DNA from: Amoebophrya sp. A120 | Taxonomy: Eukaryota; Protista; Dinoflagellata | DNA length: 64,000 nucleotides | Direction of reading: 5' to 3' | Assembly: GCA_905178155.1 (NCBI GenBank) | Contig: CAJINV010000006.1 | Location: 4,092,130-4,156,129 of the forward strand | Shown: in pieces, positions 23,902 through 32,630 of the stretch | How positions within the stretch are numbered: the first letter of the stretch is position 1 | How the letters are laid out: each line of letters starts with the position of its first letter | Notes under the pieces: model-generated | Databases searched by the model: none | What the model saw: the letters and a program-made list of their open reading frames with translations, nothing else | What the model was told of the DNA's origin: nothing | Program-made: the position numbers and the translations under genes

Positions 23902-26900
23902 CTAGGTAGTAGTCCCCCCTAGGATTAATATCCTCTTCCGTCTTGCACTTCGTTGCTTGGATTGTTTTCCGTAACCGCCCCAGATATCGGGCTTGTCCAA
24001 GCAGGCCTCCACAAGTTTCACATAGTCTTCGTCCCCCTCCACCGTCATGATATCTCTCCAGGACCTCAAATCCTGCTTGAACCGTTCGCACTTATCAAAC
24101 ATGAACTCCACATCTTTCAACTTCGCCACATATGAACTGCAAAAGTATCGTAGAAGTAGTACAAATTGCATTACAAATTTGCTCAGCATTACAAATGGAA
24201 TTTGTAATGCGGATTTGCCTATAAGCAAAAAATTTGTGATGCATAAAAGCAATTAGTACGAGTACGATACTTTTGCACAGGATACCACATTCCAATCTTT
24301 GATATCCTGATTGAAATTCTCGCACCCCGCAAACATCCCCTATCAAAATGAAAAATTCCCCCTCCCCACATCAAAAAGGGAAATTTGTGATGCTGATTTG
24401 TGGCCACAAATCAGCTTTGTCATGCTAGAAGGCAAATAAAGATGCGGACTGTAGTGCTGGGTTGCGTGGGAAACAAGCCTTGCATCTTCAGCATGACAGG
24501 AGGCAGCTGGAACAAGTGGGAAACAGCGTGACAAATTGCCTGCAGACGAGACCACGACTGCGCCTCTTTGCCTTCTAGCAATACAAGTCGATGTATGCAC
24601 TCAGATACAGCATGACAAGTTTCGTTTTCGATATGGGGAGGGAAGATTTTTCCTCACGATATCCCCCGCATCGTGGTCACGTTGGAAACGTCCCAATGCT
24701 TCAGCTTATGGAAGCGTCAGGACTGAAATCGTCAAAGTTGAAATAGTTTGTGATGCATGAAATGCAACCCACAAAATGCCTCTCTTGCAGAGTAGGCTAG
24801 GGAAGCAGATTGCAAGCCTGTTGAGGGGTAGAAATAGAGCTGCTAAAGTTGCATGACGAAAGGCGTCTTCCTTACCGAAACAGCATGACAAACTGGATGT
24901 AGGCACCACCAAAATTTATCATGCACCACTTGAGAGCTGGGCTGTGACTGGACTCCATTTTATGCATGGCAAATTATTTCAACTCGGTCGATTTCAAACC
25001 TGACAGATCCATACAGCTTCCGGTCGAAATACGCACACCCGAGAAACATGCCGGCCATGTTCGTAGCACCCGAAACGTCCCACGCACTGTATGACCTGCT
25101 CAAACGTTACAATCTCAAACGTTACAATAGAGTCGGGAAATCTGTGATGCAAGAAATGCATGATCTAGCCAACTCTCATAGGACTGCGCATGACAAGTTC
25201 CGGAGTCCCACACCGCACTACAATCTGGCGAAATTTGTATTGCAGAAAGTGGAACGGTCTACGAGTCTGTAATGCTCATGATGCAAGACAAGTCCCAGAT
25301 TCTATTGTAACGTTTGAGATTGTAACACCTGAGCGGGTTATACACTGATATCGCTGTTGAAGTAGCTCGTTTCAACATCATCGGGATTATTCAAACGGGG
25401 ATACCAGCGAGCAGTAGAACTGAAGTTGGGAAAGCGCGAGAAGAGAGCGGAAAAATCTTGTATCAAATGTAAAAATGTCTGGGTCTGGAAGATTGTGAGA
25501 CTTGTCATGCATATTTCGGATCACGCAAATGGCGTCTGATGCAGGCAAAAGCATCACAGGTTCTGGGCACGTCTCATGATGCCTGTCCCGCATGAGAGAC
25601 TTCCTGCTTCCGTGCGAAGAAGTGGACAGCTTTTGGCGCTCATGCAACACAAATTTTTGTGTGTTCCAGAGTTTGCATCGCAAGTTCCAACTCTTCCAGA
25701 CCCAGACATTTTTGCAATCCATATCTTGGATGGCACTGCAATCCCAAATTCGAATCGGCCCGTAGAGCTCTTCGGCTTCCATATCAAATGCAAAAATGTC
25801 TGGGTCTGGAAGATTTCTAGAGTTGTCATGCATATTTCCCATGATCCGTGTCGTCTGGAATGCAGGACCTAGCATGACAGATTCTGCCAGATCCCTATCA
25901 TGCTTACCCTGCATGAGAGACTGCCTCGCGATTAGGTCAAAAGTGGACAGCTTTTGATAATCATGCAACACAGATTTTTACATGATTCAGATTTAGCATG
26001 ACAAGTTGCTTTGTTCCAGACCCAGACATTTTTACAGTCGATATTCCAATTGCGTTCGCGAAACTTCTTTGGAACGGTGAAAAGTCCGGTTTCGCGTGTC
26101 CAGGTAGGGGAGTAGGATCCGGTTTAGAATATTCCGACTGGGAACCGGATATCACACCAAAGAGTGTTAACGTTAACGAAATTTGGCATGCAGGAATGCA
26201 GGATAAATGATGCCCAAATACAAATTTGTATTGCATAGCATGCATGATAGCGAAAATTTGTCATGCATGACTGCAGTGCCCCAAAACCGTTAACGTTAAC
26301 ACTTTTTTGCTCGATACCGGATCAAAGGTCTTGATGAAGAATTTCAGATTGAAATAATGAACAACTACTTGTTCATCTACATCCGCACTGTTCATCTTCC
26401 GCTCCTCCTGATCGACGACGTGTGCTGGCCTACTTTCGTTATGATTTGTTCCCACGTGGGCGGAAGTACTAGATGTAGAAAACGTAGAAGAAGATGGTGG
26501 AGAATTTTCAAAAACGTAGTTCCGCTTCTTGTTTTCCCGGTCGATGTTCTCTGAATAGTTAGCCAAGTACCGTTTCACCGTTTCCGCTACCACAGAGTCT
26601 ATTTTTTCCTGGTCTACCTTGGTCCTCGAAGCTGATGAAGATGAACACGTAGTTTCCCTCACCACGCGCATGATTTCTTTGTCCTGCTTCATTTCCTGTT
26701 CGAGGAGAAAGCTCAACGCGTTTTGGCTCGGCGTGGCGGTAACGACATCTGGGTTTGCTTCATCCACAGTCCGAACAGCGTGGTTGTATCAAATGTAAAA
26801 GTATCTGGGTCTGGAAGAATGTCATGCTAAAAATGAAGCAAGCAAAAATCTGTGTTGCATGAGTACCAAAAGTCGTCCAGTTTTGACCAAGTCGGGCGGG

Positions 26901-29900
26901 AGTTTCTCATGCAGAATAAGCATGAGAGAGATTGATCGCACAGAATGTGTCATGCTAGGTCCTGCATTCCAGACCTCATGGGTCATGGAAAAGCTGCATG
27001 ACAAGTCGCCTTCTTTCCAGACCCAGACATTTTTGCATTTGATAGGTTGTTAGCCGCGACGATTTTCCAGGAGGTTCTTGTCGACTCCTGTTTCGCTGCA
27101 CAGTTAATCTCCCCGGTCGTGCTACTGCTACAACTACCCGCTGAAAATAAATCTTCAGGTCGTCGTGGAGAGGACAACATCACGCCTTCTACGTCTTCGG
27201 AGTGAACATTCGTCCCGTTCTTGGATGTTGAACGATGGTTGGAATAAACAGATGAGTTGCATGCTTGTTCGGCTGCATTTCTTGTCGTCGCGGCCACGGT
27301 AGAAGAAGAAGTACTTGAAGCAGTTGCTCTTATCGTAAGGAAAAACCCCCCCTCCCCATATCAAGAAGCTACTTCTCAGAAAATTTGCAATGCTGATTTG
27401 TGGCCACAAATCTTTTTGTCTTGCAAGCAGGCAACTCTACAGTCTCCGCCGCATTATGCGGACGGTTTGTGATGCTGCTTGGGCTAAAGCATAGACATTT
27501 GTGATGCTAAGCGTCCACGTCAGAAGCTCGGTACTCAGGCACGGCATATGCCTGCAGTCCTCTACTGCAAGACAGCTCTGATTTGTGTACGGAAATCCAG
27601 CATCAGAAACTTCGTTTTGATATGGGGAGGGGGGATTTTTCCTCTCAATAGTTCTGCCGCTATCATCAGACTCGATCATCAAAATGACGTTTTCCCAGAA
27701 TATCAAATTTAAAAATATCTGGGTCTGGAAGATTGCAACTTGTCATGCTAAATCTGCAGCATGCAAAAATCTGTGTTGCATGATTACCAAAAGTAGTCCA
27801 GTTTTGACCAAGTCGGGAGGTAGTTTCTCATGCAGGATAGGCATTAGAAAGGTCTCGCAGAATCTGTCATGCTGGGTCTCGCATTCCAGACCTCATTGGT
27901 CATGAAAAACCTGCATCACAAATCTTGCATTCTTCCAGACCCAGACATTTTCACATTTGATACAGAACACGGGCCGCCGACGGTGGGACAGCTCTCGCGG
28001 AGGTCGGGCGGGTTGTAATTCTTCAACACTAGAACAAATGACACCAGGCGTGGCCGTGGTCCCGCGACCTCCATGGTCTGGTACAGCAGTGCGGAGTTTT
28101 CCGGATCGTCCGCCGGGGAGATCTCGGTCAAGCCCTTCTGCACGTTGTTGATGAAGCCCATCAGCTGCACAATCCGCTCCTCGACGTAGCTGTGCAGGTA
28201 CATCGAGTACTTCTCCTCCCACTTCGCGACGTACTGCACCAGGTTGATCTTCACGGGCTGCGAGTTGATGCGCAGCCAGTGGATGTCCACCGGGGTTTTC
28301 GTCCCCGCAATTTCCTCTTTCAACCGCTTGAATCGCGTGATCTGCTCGTCGAACCTATGCAATGTAAATTTCCCGGACATGTACAAAATGCATGACAAAT
28401 TCCGCTAACTTGCAGTGTCCAACTTGTCATGCTAGACTAGGATTGAAGGCAAGTTTTGTCATGCAGAGACTTCTGCATTTGTACGTGTACGAGAAATTTC
28501 CTGTGGATAGAACCGCTCGAACGGCGGGATCTTGGGGCCCATGTCGATGCCGGCCGTGTCCATCAGCGTGTGGAAGTCCATGCCGTCCTCCACTTCCGGG
28601 TTCACCAAGTCCTTCGCGCCGTCCAGCAAAAAGTCGGCGAAGGTCTCTTCGAGGGATTCCTTCCACAAAAAGCTGTGCTGCATGAACGTCTGCCGGTAGT
28701 CGATGCACTTCATCTCCGTGTTGTCGATCAGCTCGAACACGAGAGACAACAAGCATTGCATCTGAAATATCAAATGTAAAAATGTCTGGGTCTGGAAGGT
28801 TGGAACTTGTGATGCTAACTTTACACTCTAAAAAAATCTGTATTGCATGACCAGCAAGAGAGGTCTCGTTTCTGCTACGCGGGGAGGGCATTTGTCATGC
28901 GGAGTAAGCAGCAGGAAGCCCTCTAAAAATCTGTGATGCTAGGTCGTGCATTACAGACATCCTGGGTCGTGCACAATATGCATGACAAGTTTCAGAATCT
29001 TCCAGACCCAGACATTTTTGCATTTGATATGAAAGTGCTCCTTCATCTCGTTCAGGTAATCCCCGGTACCGGTGTCCAAACGTGGCATGGTGACCGCCGC
29101 CATGGCGAAGAATTCAGAACAAATGACACCAGGCGTGGCCGTGGTCCCGCGACCTCCATCTTCTTCCTCTTCTCTTCCAAGTAGCTCATTAGATGAATTC
29201 TGCCTTCCGTAGGAGCCATCCTCTACTTCGGTCCTCCGCAGTTCCGTCACCCGCCGGGCGATGGCTTTTCGCAAGGCCAAAATCGTGGTCCTTTCCGCGT
29301 CGAAGGCGATAGAGTCGTCGTCGAGGGCCGAAGGAGTAGTATGATCGTCTTCTGCCCCGGGAGACGGCCCGGCACAAGAACCTAGTACCGCGGGGACACC
29401 TTCCTTATAATTTTTATTTCCTCGTACTACGATTGATTCTTTATCCTCGTGCGGGAACGGGAACCGTAGCGGCTCTCCCGACAGCGCGTTGCGGATGGAT
29501 AAGTAAAACACGAGTTTCCTCCTGTCGCGACTCTGCACGCTGTCTGTTCTCTCCTTTGTTTGTTCTTGTTCCCGCCCTGCGGGCCGCTTCTTGAATGCAG
29601 TAATTATGCTCCTTTTTTTTTCCTGCTTTTTCGGATCACTATTTTTCAGAACTTCTTGATCGTGGTCCACTTTTTCTTCATCCTCTGCTACCAACCTTCG
29701 GAACGAGAGAGGCGTGAAATAAACTGAGGAAAATGCCTGTCTTGCAGAGTAGGCAAGGGAAGCAGATTACAAGCCTGTTTCGGGGTAGAAATAGAGCTGC
29801 TAGAGTAGCATGACAAATGGCGTCTTCCTTACCCAAACAGCATTACAGACTGGATTTCGGCTCTAGTTACATTTGCCATGCGCCGCTTAGAAATTGGGCT

Positions 29901-32630
29901 TCCATCTGGTATCGATTTTATGCATTACAAGTTATTTCAACTTTGTCGATCTCCTAGGCAGCATGATCTCGCGAGGAGGAGGAACAGGAAAGATCTAGTA
30001 TGCAACCACTGCTACCAACCTTCGGAACGAGGGAGGCGTGAAATGAACTGAGGAAAATGCCTGTCTTGCAGAGTAGGCAAGGGATGCAGATTTTAAGCCT
30101 GTTTCGGGGTAGAAATAGAGCTGCTAGAGTAGCATGACAAATGGCGTCTTCCTTACCCAAACAGCATTACAGACTGGATTTCGGCTCTAGTTACATTTGC
30201 CATGCGCCGCTTAGAAATTGGGCTTCCATCTGGTATCGATTTTATGCATTACAAGTTATTTCAACTTTGTCGATCTCCTAGGCAGCATGATCTCGCGAGG
30301 AGGAGGAACAGGAAAGACCTAGTATGCAACCACTGCTACCAACCTTCGGAACGAGGGAGGCGTGAAATGAACTGAGGAAAATGCCTGTCTTGCAGAGTAG
30401 GCAAGGGAAGCAGATTACAAGCCTGTTTCGGGGTAGAAATAGAGCTGCTAGAGTAGCATGACAAATGGCGTCTTCCTTACCCAAACAGCATTACAGACTG
30501 GATTTCGGCTCTAGTTACATTTGCCATGCGCCGCTTAGAAATTGGGCTTCCATCTGGTATCGATTTTATGCATTACAAGTTATTTCAACTTTGTCGATCT
30601 CCTAGGCAGCATGATCTCGCGAGGAGGAGGAACAGGAAAGAACTAGTATGCAACCACTGCTACCAACCTTCGGAACGAGGGAGGCGTGAAATGAACAGAG
30701 GGTTCTTGTCGACTCCTGTTTCGTTGCAATATTGATCTCCCCGGTCGTGCTACTGCTACAACTACCCGCTGAAAACAAATCTTAAGGTCCGGGTCCCCCG
30801 ACAGGAAACGTTGTTCCGGGCCTCCCGCACAGGAAAATTGTAGGCCTCTCTGAGCCGCGGAAAGTTTCGGGCCGAGAGGCCAGCTAAGGTGCATCCGGGA
30901 CCCTTGCATGAGAAACGGCAGGCCCCCCGTGGCGTGGGAAAGTTCAAGGCGAAGGCGAAACAGAGCCCAGGGCGCAGTATTTCTCTCTCTTGCCAGGAGC
31001 TCGACAACCCCAGGGCCGCCCCCCCGGCGTGCCAGTCCCTGCCTCCCGAAGGTGAAGAAAACTCTGGAGCCCCCGCCGAGGCGGGAAAACATAAGCCTCC
31101 CGTGGGGAGAAAATTGTGGCCCGGCCGGCAGGGGAATCCAATTGGTTCCTGGATTCCGGGAAGACAATGCCCCGGGCCTTCCGGAAGGGCAAATTCCGGG
31201 CCTCCCGGGCATGAATGTGACGGCGCCCCAGGACGCAAAAGCCTCGGGGCTCCCCGGCGCAAAGGCTGTAGACGTCCCCAACCCCTCAATCCATCACTGT
31301 GCATCAGTCGTTCGGTGCGCCTGCCTTGGTCCAACAACATCACGAGCGATAGATTTTTGCTCGATGAACTCTACTCGCGAGAATGGAAGAACGCACGGCC
31401 GGTGATGCGTGGACGCGCCGAATATGCATGGCAATGTTGCGCGGGCTATGCGTGGCGCAACATATTTTTACTCATGTTTACGCGGGCTACGCGTGGCATT
31501 TAGCTACCAACCTTCGGAACGAGGGAGGCATGAAATGAATTGACGCCCCATTCCAGAGTTGTATATGCAAAATGGCATGCCTAAAATGTTTCTCATGCGC
31601 AGCCCCATGGGAGACATTTTGTCATGCTATCTGGAAGTTTGTGATGCTGCAATCAGGATAAGGTAGTCGATTTGTCATGCGGCTGCACTACCTGCCCAAA
31701 CAGCACTGCACTACGAGTCTAAACTTGTTATGCGAAACAGCCAAAACTTGTTTTTTTGTGTAGCAAAATCACCATCTTGACTCTGGGGTGGGGACGTTTT
31801 TCCATATGATACTGTCTGTTCTCTCCTGTGTTTCTTGTTCCTGTGGTCCTGAGAGGAGCTTCTTCTTGGATGCAGCTGCAATCATGCTCCTTTTTTCTTC
31901 CTGCTTTTTTGGGTCAACAGTTTTAACAGCTTCTTCGTCGTGATCCGCTTCTCCTTCTCTTTCTTCTTGCGTCTGCGCGTCCAACTTGCCATAATTTGAT
32001 GTGCCTCGGGGGCCCAGCACTGCAGCTTCCTCTTTCGTTGGTTTGGACACTCCTTCTCTTCTGCTCGCATGCCGCGATAGTATCCGGTCGCTTTTCTTGC
32101 TTCCTCGATTTTGCTCTGCACTTCTACCGAAGAACCGCGATCTTTCTGATGGCGTTCTTGGTTCGCCAATGTTCTTCTTCCCAATTCCGATCCACTCTAG
32201 TGCAACTTCTGGTTCTGCTCTGTCCCTGTCCGCTGTGATCATGTAAGAATAATCGCCGGCTTCTTCATCTTCATCCTCTGCTACCAACCTTCGGGACGAG
32301 GGAGGCGTGAAATGAACTGAGGTTCTTTTTTATCAAATGTAAAAATCCCTGGATGTCTGGAAAAGTGTAGACTTGTCATGCAGATTTTCCATGACCCATG
32401 AGGTCTGGAATGCGGGACTTAGCATGACAGACTCTGCGAGGTCTCCGCCATGCCTGTCCTGCATGAGAAACTCCCTTCCAACTTGGTGAAAAGTGGACAG
32501 CTTTTGGCACTCATGCAACACAGATTTTTGCATGCTTCAGATTCACCATGACAAGTTGCAATCTTCCAGACCCAGACATTTTTGCAATTCATATTTTTTC
32601 GCAACGGTGCGCAGTAGATGAGCGATTCAT
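23902..32630 (-). CDS. DUF285/BspA-like repeat protein (~721 aa if all insertions are removed); may be disrupted
   Basis: C-terminal YGPIRIWDCSAIQDFSALF...FNSDISAWDVSGATNMAGMFLGCAYFDRKLKHWDVSNVTTMRGMFAGCENFNQDIKDWNV is the DUF285 repeat pattern; the full frame (2166 nt) needs removal of 11 introners plus 28075-29159 and 29730-32322. Confidence 0.7.
24131..24284. mobile_element. Introner family E
   Basis: TIR tgcaaaagtatcgta; TSD ccaca. Confidence 0.9.
24341..24661. mobile_element. Introner family B
   Basis: TIRs; TSD tcccc. Confidence 0.9.
24707..25013. mobile_element. Introner family I
   Basis: TIR tatggaagcgtcaggactgaaatcg; TSD cagct. Confidence 0.9.
25090..25342. mobile_element. Introner family H
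   Basis: TIR with gttacaatctcaaacgttacaataga; TSD cactg. Confidence 0.9.
25461..25723. mobile_element. Introner family A
   Basis: TIRs; TSD tcttg. Confidence 0.9.
25782..26043. mobile_element. Introner family A
   Basis: TIRs; TSD ttcca. Confidence 0.9.
26150..26316. mobile_element. Introner family G
   Basis: TIR with agtgttaacgttaacg; TSD ccgga. Confidence 0.9.
26787..27044. mobile_element. Introner family A
   Basis: TIRs; TSD ggttg. Confidence 0.9.
27331..27650. mobile_element. Introner family B
   Basis: TIRs; TSD gctct/gttct. Confidence 0.9.
27701..27962. mobile_element. Introner family A
   Basis: TIRs; TSD cagaa. Confidence 0.9.
28356..28509. mobile_element. Introner family J (inside dynein fragment)
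   Basis: Imperfect TIR aaatttc..gtacaaa.tgca; TSD gaacc. Confidence 0.85.
28768..29029. mobile_element. Introner family A (inside dynein fragment)
   Basis: TIRs; TSD tgaaa. Confidence 0.9.
29687..32322. repeat. Six copies of a ~43-bp exon-derived repeat separated by captured DNA; first three units form a 324-bp tandem repeat
   Basis: gctaccaaccttcggaacgagggaggcgtgaaatgaactgagg-like copies at 29687, 30011, 30335, 30659, 31503, 32280. Confidence 0.92.
31544..31811. mobile_element. Introner family C, left TIR truncated
   Basis: Right TIR ggggtggggacgttttttccatatgata; left end replaced by the 43-bp repeat. Confidence 0.75.
32331..32593. mobile_element. Introner family A
   Basis: TIRs; TSD ttttt. 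Confidence 0.9.

Follow-up and report, generated by a model that had tools for sequence, protein, structure and literature searches.

The parasitic dinoflagellate Amoebophrya sp. A120 carries, within a transcribed exon, a 1041-bp fragment of a dynein heavy-chain gene that is flanked by two exact 44-nt copies of exon sequence. The fragment lies in the 64-kb window analyzed here (contig C6, positions 4092130 to 4156129; positions given below without a contig or locus name are those of the window), in a part of it whose genes are on the minus strand. We consider it probable that the fragment is a recent templated insertion, in which the repair of a staggered break captured dynein DNA. The insert is retained in the RNA and is a scar that shortens the reading frame; its interpretation as a newly born intron is not supported.

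The two copies of the direct repeat (family D8) lie at 29116-29159 (R1, host exon sequence, read as DGGRGTTATPGVICS) and 28031-28074 (R2, read in the dynein frame in the message as MEVAGPRPRLVSFVL), both on the minus strand. Their identity ends abruptly, with flanks that match at 11 of 40 and 12 of 40 positions, which is the chance level. When exact repeats of at least 25 nt were scanned, R1/R2 was the sole clean long direct repeat of the window, introner termini, tandem arrays, and one upstream array of a 43- to 45-nt motif being left aside. Enclosed by the repeats (28075-29115, minus strand) are three dynein exon pieces and two introners, with borders set by an RNA contig and the RNA-guided published gene model P0004. 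In the direction of transcription, these are exon piece E1 (86 nt, 29030-29115; border from P0004), introner 1 (267 nt including one copy of its TTTCA target, 28763-29029, with the terminal inverted repeat TATCAAATG..., inverted repeat I3), exon piece E2 (253 nt, 28510-28762; covered by an RNA contig of sequencing run X6), introner 2 (159 nt, 28351-28509, with a GGTTC target duplication; record 11, an X6 contig, joins 28350 to 28510), and exon piece E3 (276 nt, 28075-28350).

E3 matches residues 1047 to 1131 of the Tetrahymena outer-arm dynein beta heavy chain (search of PDB sequences, E = 1.3e-12). A Pfam search of the short dynein pieces gave no match, which is explained by the position of the fragment between the DHC_N1 and DHC_N2 regions, as located on the paralogue on contig C3. 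A functional dynein heavy chain has a tail, a linker, and six AAA modules; the insert has 205 codons only. In the A120 assembly (115.5 Mb in 401 contigs), the exon parts of the fragment occur in three copies only, namely, in the insert itself, at C18:630841-632083 (98% identical to the insert, with two other introners inside the E3 stretch), and at C3:6440515-6441129 (86 to 92%, about 90%, identical, with no introns in this stretch). On C18 and C3, the copies sit within full-length dynein heavy-chain genes. The inverted-repeat scan found no inverted repeat joining the insert ends and no element-like termini, and neither end, reading GAATTCTTCGCC... and ...CTGTACCAGACC(ATG), has an A-run or poly(A). 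Thus, a reading made from the sequence alone (here called the sequence-only reading), which had described 1041 bp of dynein-like DNA between exact 44-bp repeats with neither terminal inverted repeats nor poly(A), was borne out by the repeat scans, the PDB match, and the end sequences. Transposon gene capture of the Pack-MULE, Helitron, or CACTA type does not fit an insert without element termini whose exon parts are present three times per genome.

Read on the minus strand, the 5′ junction is ...TTGTTCT/GAATTCTTCGCC; from 29115 onward the sequence is homologous to dynein, with 0 nt shared between host and dynein. The third dynein base is A, where C18 and C3 have C. We considered the possibility of a linker at this junction and rejected it, since GAATTC differs from GACTTC by one base. 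At the 3′ junction, ...CAGACC(ATG)GAGGTCGC, the ATG is common to the host repeat and to dynein (...ACCATGACG... in C18 and C3), and because it belongs to both, the true target duplication is 41 to 44 bp. The ends of the fragment fall inside dynein exons and not at intron borders. These junctions are marks of end joining or of template switching, and not of a transposase. A 98% copy of C18 dynein, joined with 0 and 3 nt of microhomology and with its exact donor outside the assembly, has the features of a templated insertion.

The insert is present in DNA. Four sequencing runs were compared over 24700-29670: X6, as RNA contigs; X1, as contigs; and X10 and X11, as raw RNA reads. The X1 contigs contain introner sequence, and X1 is therefore DNA. 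Their coverage takes in 28045-28250 (insert and part of R2), 28288-28406 (the border of E3 and introner 2, at a depth of 28.8), and 29130-29670 (at a depth of 24.5); nearby unique sequence has a depth of 23 to 36. Since the depth of the insert-specific contig equals that of the flanking exon, no large share of the culture carries the empty allele. That a chimeric read or a mis-join had put dynein sequence into the exon is a general possibility for any assembly, and the short-read runs may come from the culture that was assembled; even so, the insert has private synonymous variants and two exon/introner junctions that are found nowhere else in the genome, the short-read DNA contigs span introner junctions at the depth of a single copy, and in another study's RNA contigs the sequence passes from insert to repeat with 0 mismatches. 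Misassembly is thus very unlikely, and we give it next to no weight.

Over 60% of A120 introns lack GT-AG borders, and a subset of them, the introner elements, have direct repeats of 3 to 5 nt and inverted repeats of 8 to 20 nt; how introners are spliced in A120 is unknown (Farhat et al. 2021, PMC7789003). Both elements inside the dynein fragment are introners of this kind: they belong to high-copy families (over 100 copies at 90 to 96% identity for introner 1; 792 candidates, the best at 95%, for introner 2), they have terminal inverted repeats and 5-nt target duplications (TTTCA and GGTTC), and both are removed from the RNA, as seen in the X6 contigs and in P0004.

The dynein fragment as a whole behaves differently. 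The X6 contigs join exons precisely, with introners removed and 0 mismatches. Record 11, from the insert, consists of 28045-28350, 28510-28762, and about 50 nt more, again with 0 mismatches, at a depth of 11.6. It extends 30 nt into R2 and therefore comes from this locus and not from a dynein gene. Record 12 covers the upstream host exon (29670-29130, depth 12.7), and record 10 lies downstream (27325-27118, depth 11.5) and extends back toward R2. All of these contigs halt exactly 30 nt inside a repeat copy, as a 31-mer graph does at a 44-nt repeat. A skipped form, in which exon, one repeat, and exon are joined, makes no new 31-mer and is therefore visible by depth alone. Skipping would lift both flanks above the insert; the flanks are at 12.7 and 11.5 and the insert is at 11.6, and the skipped isoform therefore accounts for at most about a tenth of the transcripts. 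In agreement with this, and independently of the contigs, P0004 reads ...GVICS/EFFAMAAV...KEHF/QMQCLL..., that is, host exon, R1, and E1, with introner 1 removed, and then E2. X10 and X11, raw RNA-seq data from 2026 under the same organism label, have essentially no reads on 24700-29670, which is transcribed in X6; they may be host-dominated samples or come from another strain or another life stage.

The sequence-only reading had gone further and proposed that the insert plus one repeat, a unit of 1085 nt, may be an intron defined by direct repeats alone, and it had named retention of the fragment in transcripts as the observation that would speak against this. Retention is what the X6 contigs and P0004 show, and the proposal is not supported: the unit is not removed from mature RNA, and it has a 44-nt repeat instead of the 8- to 20-nt terminal inverted repeats and 3- to 5-nt direct repeats of introners. 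A weaker version, in which the unit is spliced from only some of the transcripts through its direct repeats, so that the host frame is restored by a new kind of intron, could draw on the species' many non-GT-AG introns with short direct repeats across their borders (PMC7789003), on the long intact frame that removal would restore, and on contig data with which a minor isoform is compatible. We regard it as hardly credible. The insert and both its flanks have the same RNA depth, the published model retains the insert, and the ends of the unit, unlike those of the introners of this species, have no terminal inverted repeat that would bring them into contact; moreover, a cDNA junction of this type could equally reflect a jump of reverse transcriptase across the 44-nt repeat. 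The insert resembles the introners and noncanonical introns described for Amoebophrya (PMC7789003) in having direct repeats at both borders, and its internal elements are ordinary, spliced members of that class; it differs from them in that the 1085-nt unit is retained in RNA, has a 44-nt rather than a 3- to 5-nt repeat, lacks an inverted repeat, and is not multicopy.

The consequence for the message is a chimeric frame. The host model P0004 (GSA120T00014456001.1, found by protein search as "unnamed protein product, partial [Amoebophrya sp. A120]") maps at 100% to the host exon upstream of the insertion (29160-29684, minus strand; exon 2 of GSA120T00014456001), an orphan, low-complexity coding sequence. 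Entry from this exon into the dynein piece is in phase, as seen in the open reading frame and in P0004. The spliced insert of 615 nt and the 44 nt of R2 add up to 659 nt, which leaves a remainder of 2 on division by 3, and the frame is therefore shifted on exit. Through R2 and the remainder of the interrupted exon (27963-28030, minus strand), the dynein frame reads MEVAGPRPRLVSFVLVLKNYNPPDLRESCPTVGGPCS; after removal of a host introner of the same family as introner 1 (27701-27962, minus strand, with a TTCTG target duplication; inverted repeat I2 and direct repeat D3), it ends with ...GGPCSGKTSF and then TGA (27679-27681, minus strand), 42 codons past the dynein piece. Followed exon by exon, the insert-free host frame is ...GVICS/SVEELQ...HRRRPV/FWENVILMIESDDSGRT/ASSTSSS.../HAVRTVDE..., which runs on into the DUF285 exons. 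The in-frame fusion, the frameshift on exit with its stop after GKTSF, and the intact frame and DUF285 exons on removal of the insert had all been predicted from the sequence, and all hold. With the insert in place, the DUF285 part can only be produced from downstream start codons.

What was the source of the fragment? Sequence-only reading had suggested a comparison with the source dynein locus, and this turned up the C18 and C3 relatives (98% and 86 to 92% identical) but not the exact donor, which is not in the assembly. Codon counts, done column by column across exon borders, showed that the insert differs from C18 in 16 of 205 codons, with 15 synonymous differences, 1 nonsynonymous difference, and no stops. 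The single nonsynonymous change is in the first codon of E1 (GAA, where C18 and C3 have GAC). When C3 is taken as the outgroup, 6 changes belong to the insert alone and 7 to C18 alone; the other 3 are ambiguous. Random changes in the fragment sequence are expected to be nonsynonymous in 76 to 79% of cases, and the probability of finding one or none is 4e-3 for 6 changes and 8e-5 for 9 changes. Since the differences from C18 are almost all synonymous, the insert lineage must have split from C18 (dS of about 0.11) under purifying selection, as a working dynein gene. There is no third dynein copy in the assembly. Indeed, the k-mer depth in X1 was 41.1 in record 5, where the window plus C18 predicts 42 and three copies predict about 65, and record 6 of X1, across the border of E3 and introner 2, is single copy. 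It follows that the donor was a functional dynein copy which the sequenced strain does not have, perhaps a deep allele, a lost paralogue, or a copy from another genotype. A search for donor-like open reading frames returned distant dynein fragments only (52 to 74% identity), and two metagenome scans gave 0 matches to the junction of dynein exon and introner 2 and 0 matches to the empty-site sequence, respectively. Genome searches for a paralogue of the host exon or an empty site returned the locus itself only, and a protein search for a homologue of the host exon returned the published model only.

The two resident relatives are full-length outer-arm-type dynein heavy-chain paralogues (C18, 612000-642000; C3, 6422000-6452000) whose proteins are nearly identical over the 205 codons compared, with 2 nonsynonymous and 54 synonymous codon differences. 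The C3 gene has open reading frames of 840 to 1276 codons; the C18 gene is cut up by introners. The two introners in the E3 region of C18 (locus L002, approximately 1100-1411 and approximately 772-1079) are of families other than those in the insert. One has GGGGAGGGG-type ends, like an element at 27331-27650 of the window, and the other resembles a 324-bp tandem unit at 29687-30660, from which it follows that this tandem array is built from an introner-like unit.

By several lines of sequence evidence, the capture is recent. R1 and R2 have 0 differences in 2 × 44 nt, and the insert has at most one nonsynonymous change in 615 nt. At a divergence of 2%, the probability of one or no nonsynonymous change is 0.001, and at the full per-lineage divergence from C18 of 5.4%, the probability of exact repeats is 0.009. 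Because the repeats are exact and there is at most one nonsynonymous change, the capture is bounded at about 1% of neutral divergence or less. The intact downstream host frame agrees with this. An old capture from the C18 ancestor, at a divergence of approximately 5%, after which the fragment gained its introners and was kept by selection as an expressed chimeric protein, would need no missing donor and would account for a fragment that is transcribed, in frame on entry, free of stops, and different from C18 in a nearly synonymous-only manner. We consider it highly improbable nonetheless, since a repeat of that age, if neutral, would rarely be exact at 44/44 positions (P of about 0.009), since the host frame downstream remains intact in a phase inaccessible to the chimeric message, and since the upstream "gene" is an orphan patchwork of copied pieces; strong selection on 205 dynein tail residues out of their context is implausible as well.

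The introners give a similar age. Introner 1 has 3 private differences in 267 nt compared with 20 copies of its family, and introner 2 has 2 in 159 nt compared with 3 copies only; each is therefore about 1% old. This overlaps the bound on the age of capture, and either event may have come first. Introners 1 and 2 are absent from C18 and C3, and the two E3 introners of C18 are absent from the insert. A rough likelihood comparison, taken together with the two separate introner insertions into 615 bp that would otherwise have to fall in a brief interval, favored, at about 4 to 1, introners that were already present in the donor. The earlier suggestion that the fragment still holds its own introners, having been copied from DNA or pre-mRNA, is thus supported indirectly, by the recent capture, the introner age of approximately 1%, and the local density; against it stand the C18 and C3 genes, which do not have these introners.

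How might the fragment have been inserted? We infer a staggered break, a DNA rather than an RNA template, introners carried in with it, and an insertion route common to other loci. A break or stall in the exon of the C6 gene would have been repaired with an approximately 1-kb copy of dynein heavy-chain sequence as filler, most likely DNA that bore the two introners. One end would have been joined without homology and with a miscopied base 3 nt from the junction, and the other would have been joined through the 3-nt ATG microhomology; fill-in of a 41- to 44-nt stagger would then have duplicated the target. The route would be the same as that for other inserts with duplications of 39 to 57 bp, including a GC-rich mobile element described below. 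The locus as found now is transcribed, with the introners spliced out, the fragment staying in, and the frame stopping 42 codons past the dynein piece. Captures of filler DNA at breaks include those of cDNA and mitochondrial DNA in yeast, filler DNA in plants, and templated-sequence insertion polymorphisms in humans. The dynein insert is like them in being a copy from elsewhere without transposon ends, with 0 to 3 nt of microhomology and with the donor left in place; it is unlike them in its 41- to 44-bp duplication, which is far longer than usual, in its insert of approximately 1 kb with introns, and in a signature that recurs in the genome. Break repair with a stagger of approximately 44 nt had been proposed in the sequence-only reading, and the templated insertion, the long duplication, and the 0- and 3-nt microhomologies fit it; the stagger itself is plausible.

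The strongest competitor is an RNA template. The reverse transcriptase/endonuclease of a retroelement would have nicked the exon, primed on unspliced dynein pre-mRNA through the ATG, and copied approximately 1 kb, with the second strand cut 41 to 44 nt away, in a target-primed, LINE-like reaction. Target-primed reverse transcription, as in non-LTR elements and processed pseudogenes, is marked by long, variable target duplications, and the exact 41- to 44-bp flanking duplication fits it. On the sense dynein strand, the positions of the microhomology (3′ end) and of the homology-free, miscopied junction (5′ end) fit as well, as does the lack of the two introners of the C18 gene. The intron test for a retrocopy is nevertheless divided, since the insert has two introners that C18 and C3 lack and an RNA template would have to be unspliced. 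Moreover, the 3′ end has neither poly(A) nor an element tail, the fragment comes from the interior of a very long message of roughly 14 kb, no reverse transcriptase is linked to the insertion, and a mosaic insert farther upstream in the transcript includes a stretch from the interior of the mobile element, not a 5′-truncated copy, and looks like fragment capture. We regard an RNA template as unlikely, though less so than replication template switching (fork stalling and template switching/microhomology-mediated break-induced replication [FoSTeS/MMBIR]), which we consider a poor candidate. In the latter, a stalled strand would have copied 1 kb of dynein and returned 41 to 44 nt behind its point of departure, without any staggered cut. 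This would explain a templated insert flanked by a duplication of the departure site, the 0 to 3 nt of microhomology at the switch points, and the mosaic, multidonor insert 1.5 kb upstream with its copy of the gene's own downstream exon. The donor, though, is on another chromosome or absent, and similar duplication lengths at unrelated loci and in the mobile element (39 to 57 bp, recurrently approximately 40 to 57 bp) suggest a defined stagger and not return points taken at random.

Repair of a staggered break with dynein DNA is thus the reading that we prefer, and four points weigh against it. The type of template and the carrying in of the introners rest on rate arguments, with a donor that was not found; the mobile element is linked to the insert solely by likeness in the lengths of duplication and insert; P0004 derives from the same assembly and may depend in part on protein evidence; and the estimate for the skipped form is from averaged contig depths, with 31-mer contigs that are blind across a 44-nt repeat.

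The common route is suggested by long target duplications at other loci. The scan for long direct repeats outside the window covered 109 kb of loci collected for another purpose. At three of these loci, there is a GC-rich mobile element of approximately 1.25 to 1.6 kb, with copies that are 98 to 99% alike and short AACTTGATTCC-type terminal tandem repeats. In L023 (1438-2805), an exact 57-bp duplication surrounds 1254 bp; in L024 (115-2589), three copies of a 52- to 55-bp target surround inserts of 742 and 1572 bp, with the terminal repeats inverted at the two ends; and in L022 (1086-2784), the copies of a 39-bp repeat, 87% identical, are 1660 bp apart. Taken as a class, with an insert of roughly 0.7 to 1.6 kb and an exact or near-exact 39- to 57-bp duplication of an unrelated target, these cases take in the dynein insert, with its 44 bp around 1041 bp, and the dynein insert and the mobile-element cases may share one insertion mechanism. 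The dynein insert is the simple form, with one hit, exact repeats, and a datable cargo. Assignment of the GC-rich element to the replitrons was considered and rejected, since the published signatures of that class (short variable duplications and TAAAGG ends) do not match. In our literature search, no paper on Amoebophrya reported target duplications of such length.

The window itself contains a related pattern upstream of the insertion. At 29685-32322 (minus strand), a pyrimidine-rich motif of 43 to 45 nt that ends in CAG (CCTCAGTTCATTTCACGCCTCCCTCGTTCCGAAGGTTGGTAGCAG) occurs six times with different flanks; it looks like a duplicated 3′ splice-site region. Between two of its copies, 1.5 kb upstream of the insertion and in the same transcript, lies the GC-rich mosaic of 801 bp (30702-31502). 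It combines an internal 500-bp piece of the mobile element, with 96 to 100% identity to those on C13 and C3, and a duplicate, 92% identical, of 88 nt from a downstream exon of the same gene (27161-27074). The start codon and the first 170 residues of P0004 come from this mosaic. The P0004 intron at 30701-29685 (1017 nt, CC..AG) starts and ends with copies of the motif and removes three of the 324-bp tandem units.

Downstream of the insertion, the exons of the original host frame (23905-27180, minus strand) are represented by the models P0007, which begins at an ATG at position 27180, and P0008, a 243-amino-acid DUF285 protein (1.1e-33 against DUF285); the published annotation breaks the stretch into three fragmentary models (P0004, P0007, and P0008). 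The spliced X6 contig of this region, record 9 (depth 28.7), joins 27147-27045, 26781-26316, and 26143-26044 and continues to 25454-25343, with the borders of P0007 and P0008. The X6 depth steps from 11.5 upstream to 28.7 downstream at 27118-27147, near the P0007 ATG, and the step at approximately 27147 coincides with a 41-nt stretch that is identical to 30735-30775. The step may reflect a separate downstream transcript or a merge in the graph.

A bolder interpretation is that the fragment is DNA of another Amoebophrya genotype, from a mating partner, a co-infecting parasite, or an introgressed lineage, that was taken up by a dedicated machinery which makes staggers of approximately 40 to 57 nt and inserts kilobase fragments genome-wide. 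We think this improbable; if true, it would be a eukaryotic route of DNA acquisition with a repeat-duplicating chemistry formally like that of spacer integration. The likeness to CRISPR spacer or casposase-type integration is one of working only, in that insertion recopies a target tens of bases long, and stacked inserts do likewise; here, unlike there, no enzyme is in evidence, the site is a eukaryotic nuclear exon, and the inserts are kilobase copies of resident genes and elements.

The RNA data remove the tempting claim of an intron birth by direct repeats alone. What the locus offers instead is a clean, dated, single-hit example of how Amoebophrya coding DNA is reshuffled, by kilobase gene fragments with unusually long target duplications. 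The missing donor and its synonymous-only divergence (dS of about 0.11) point either to deep diversity among alleles or paralogues or to gene flow in these parasites. If the introners came with the fragment, they are a natural transplant: with only 86 to 276 nt of their original exon context, in an unrelated transcript, their excision is still precise, and the case would then bear on how non-GT-AG introns are recognized in Amoebophrya. Insertions of this type break and fuse reading frames, and they may help to explain the many orphan genes of A120 and the fragmentary published models at this locus.

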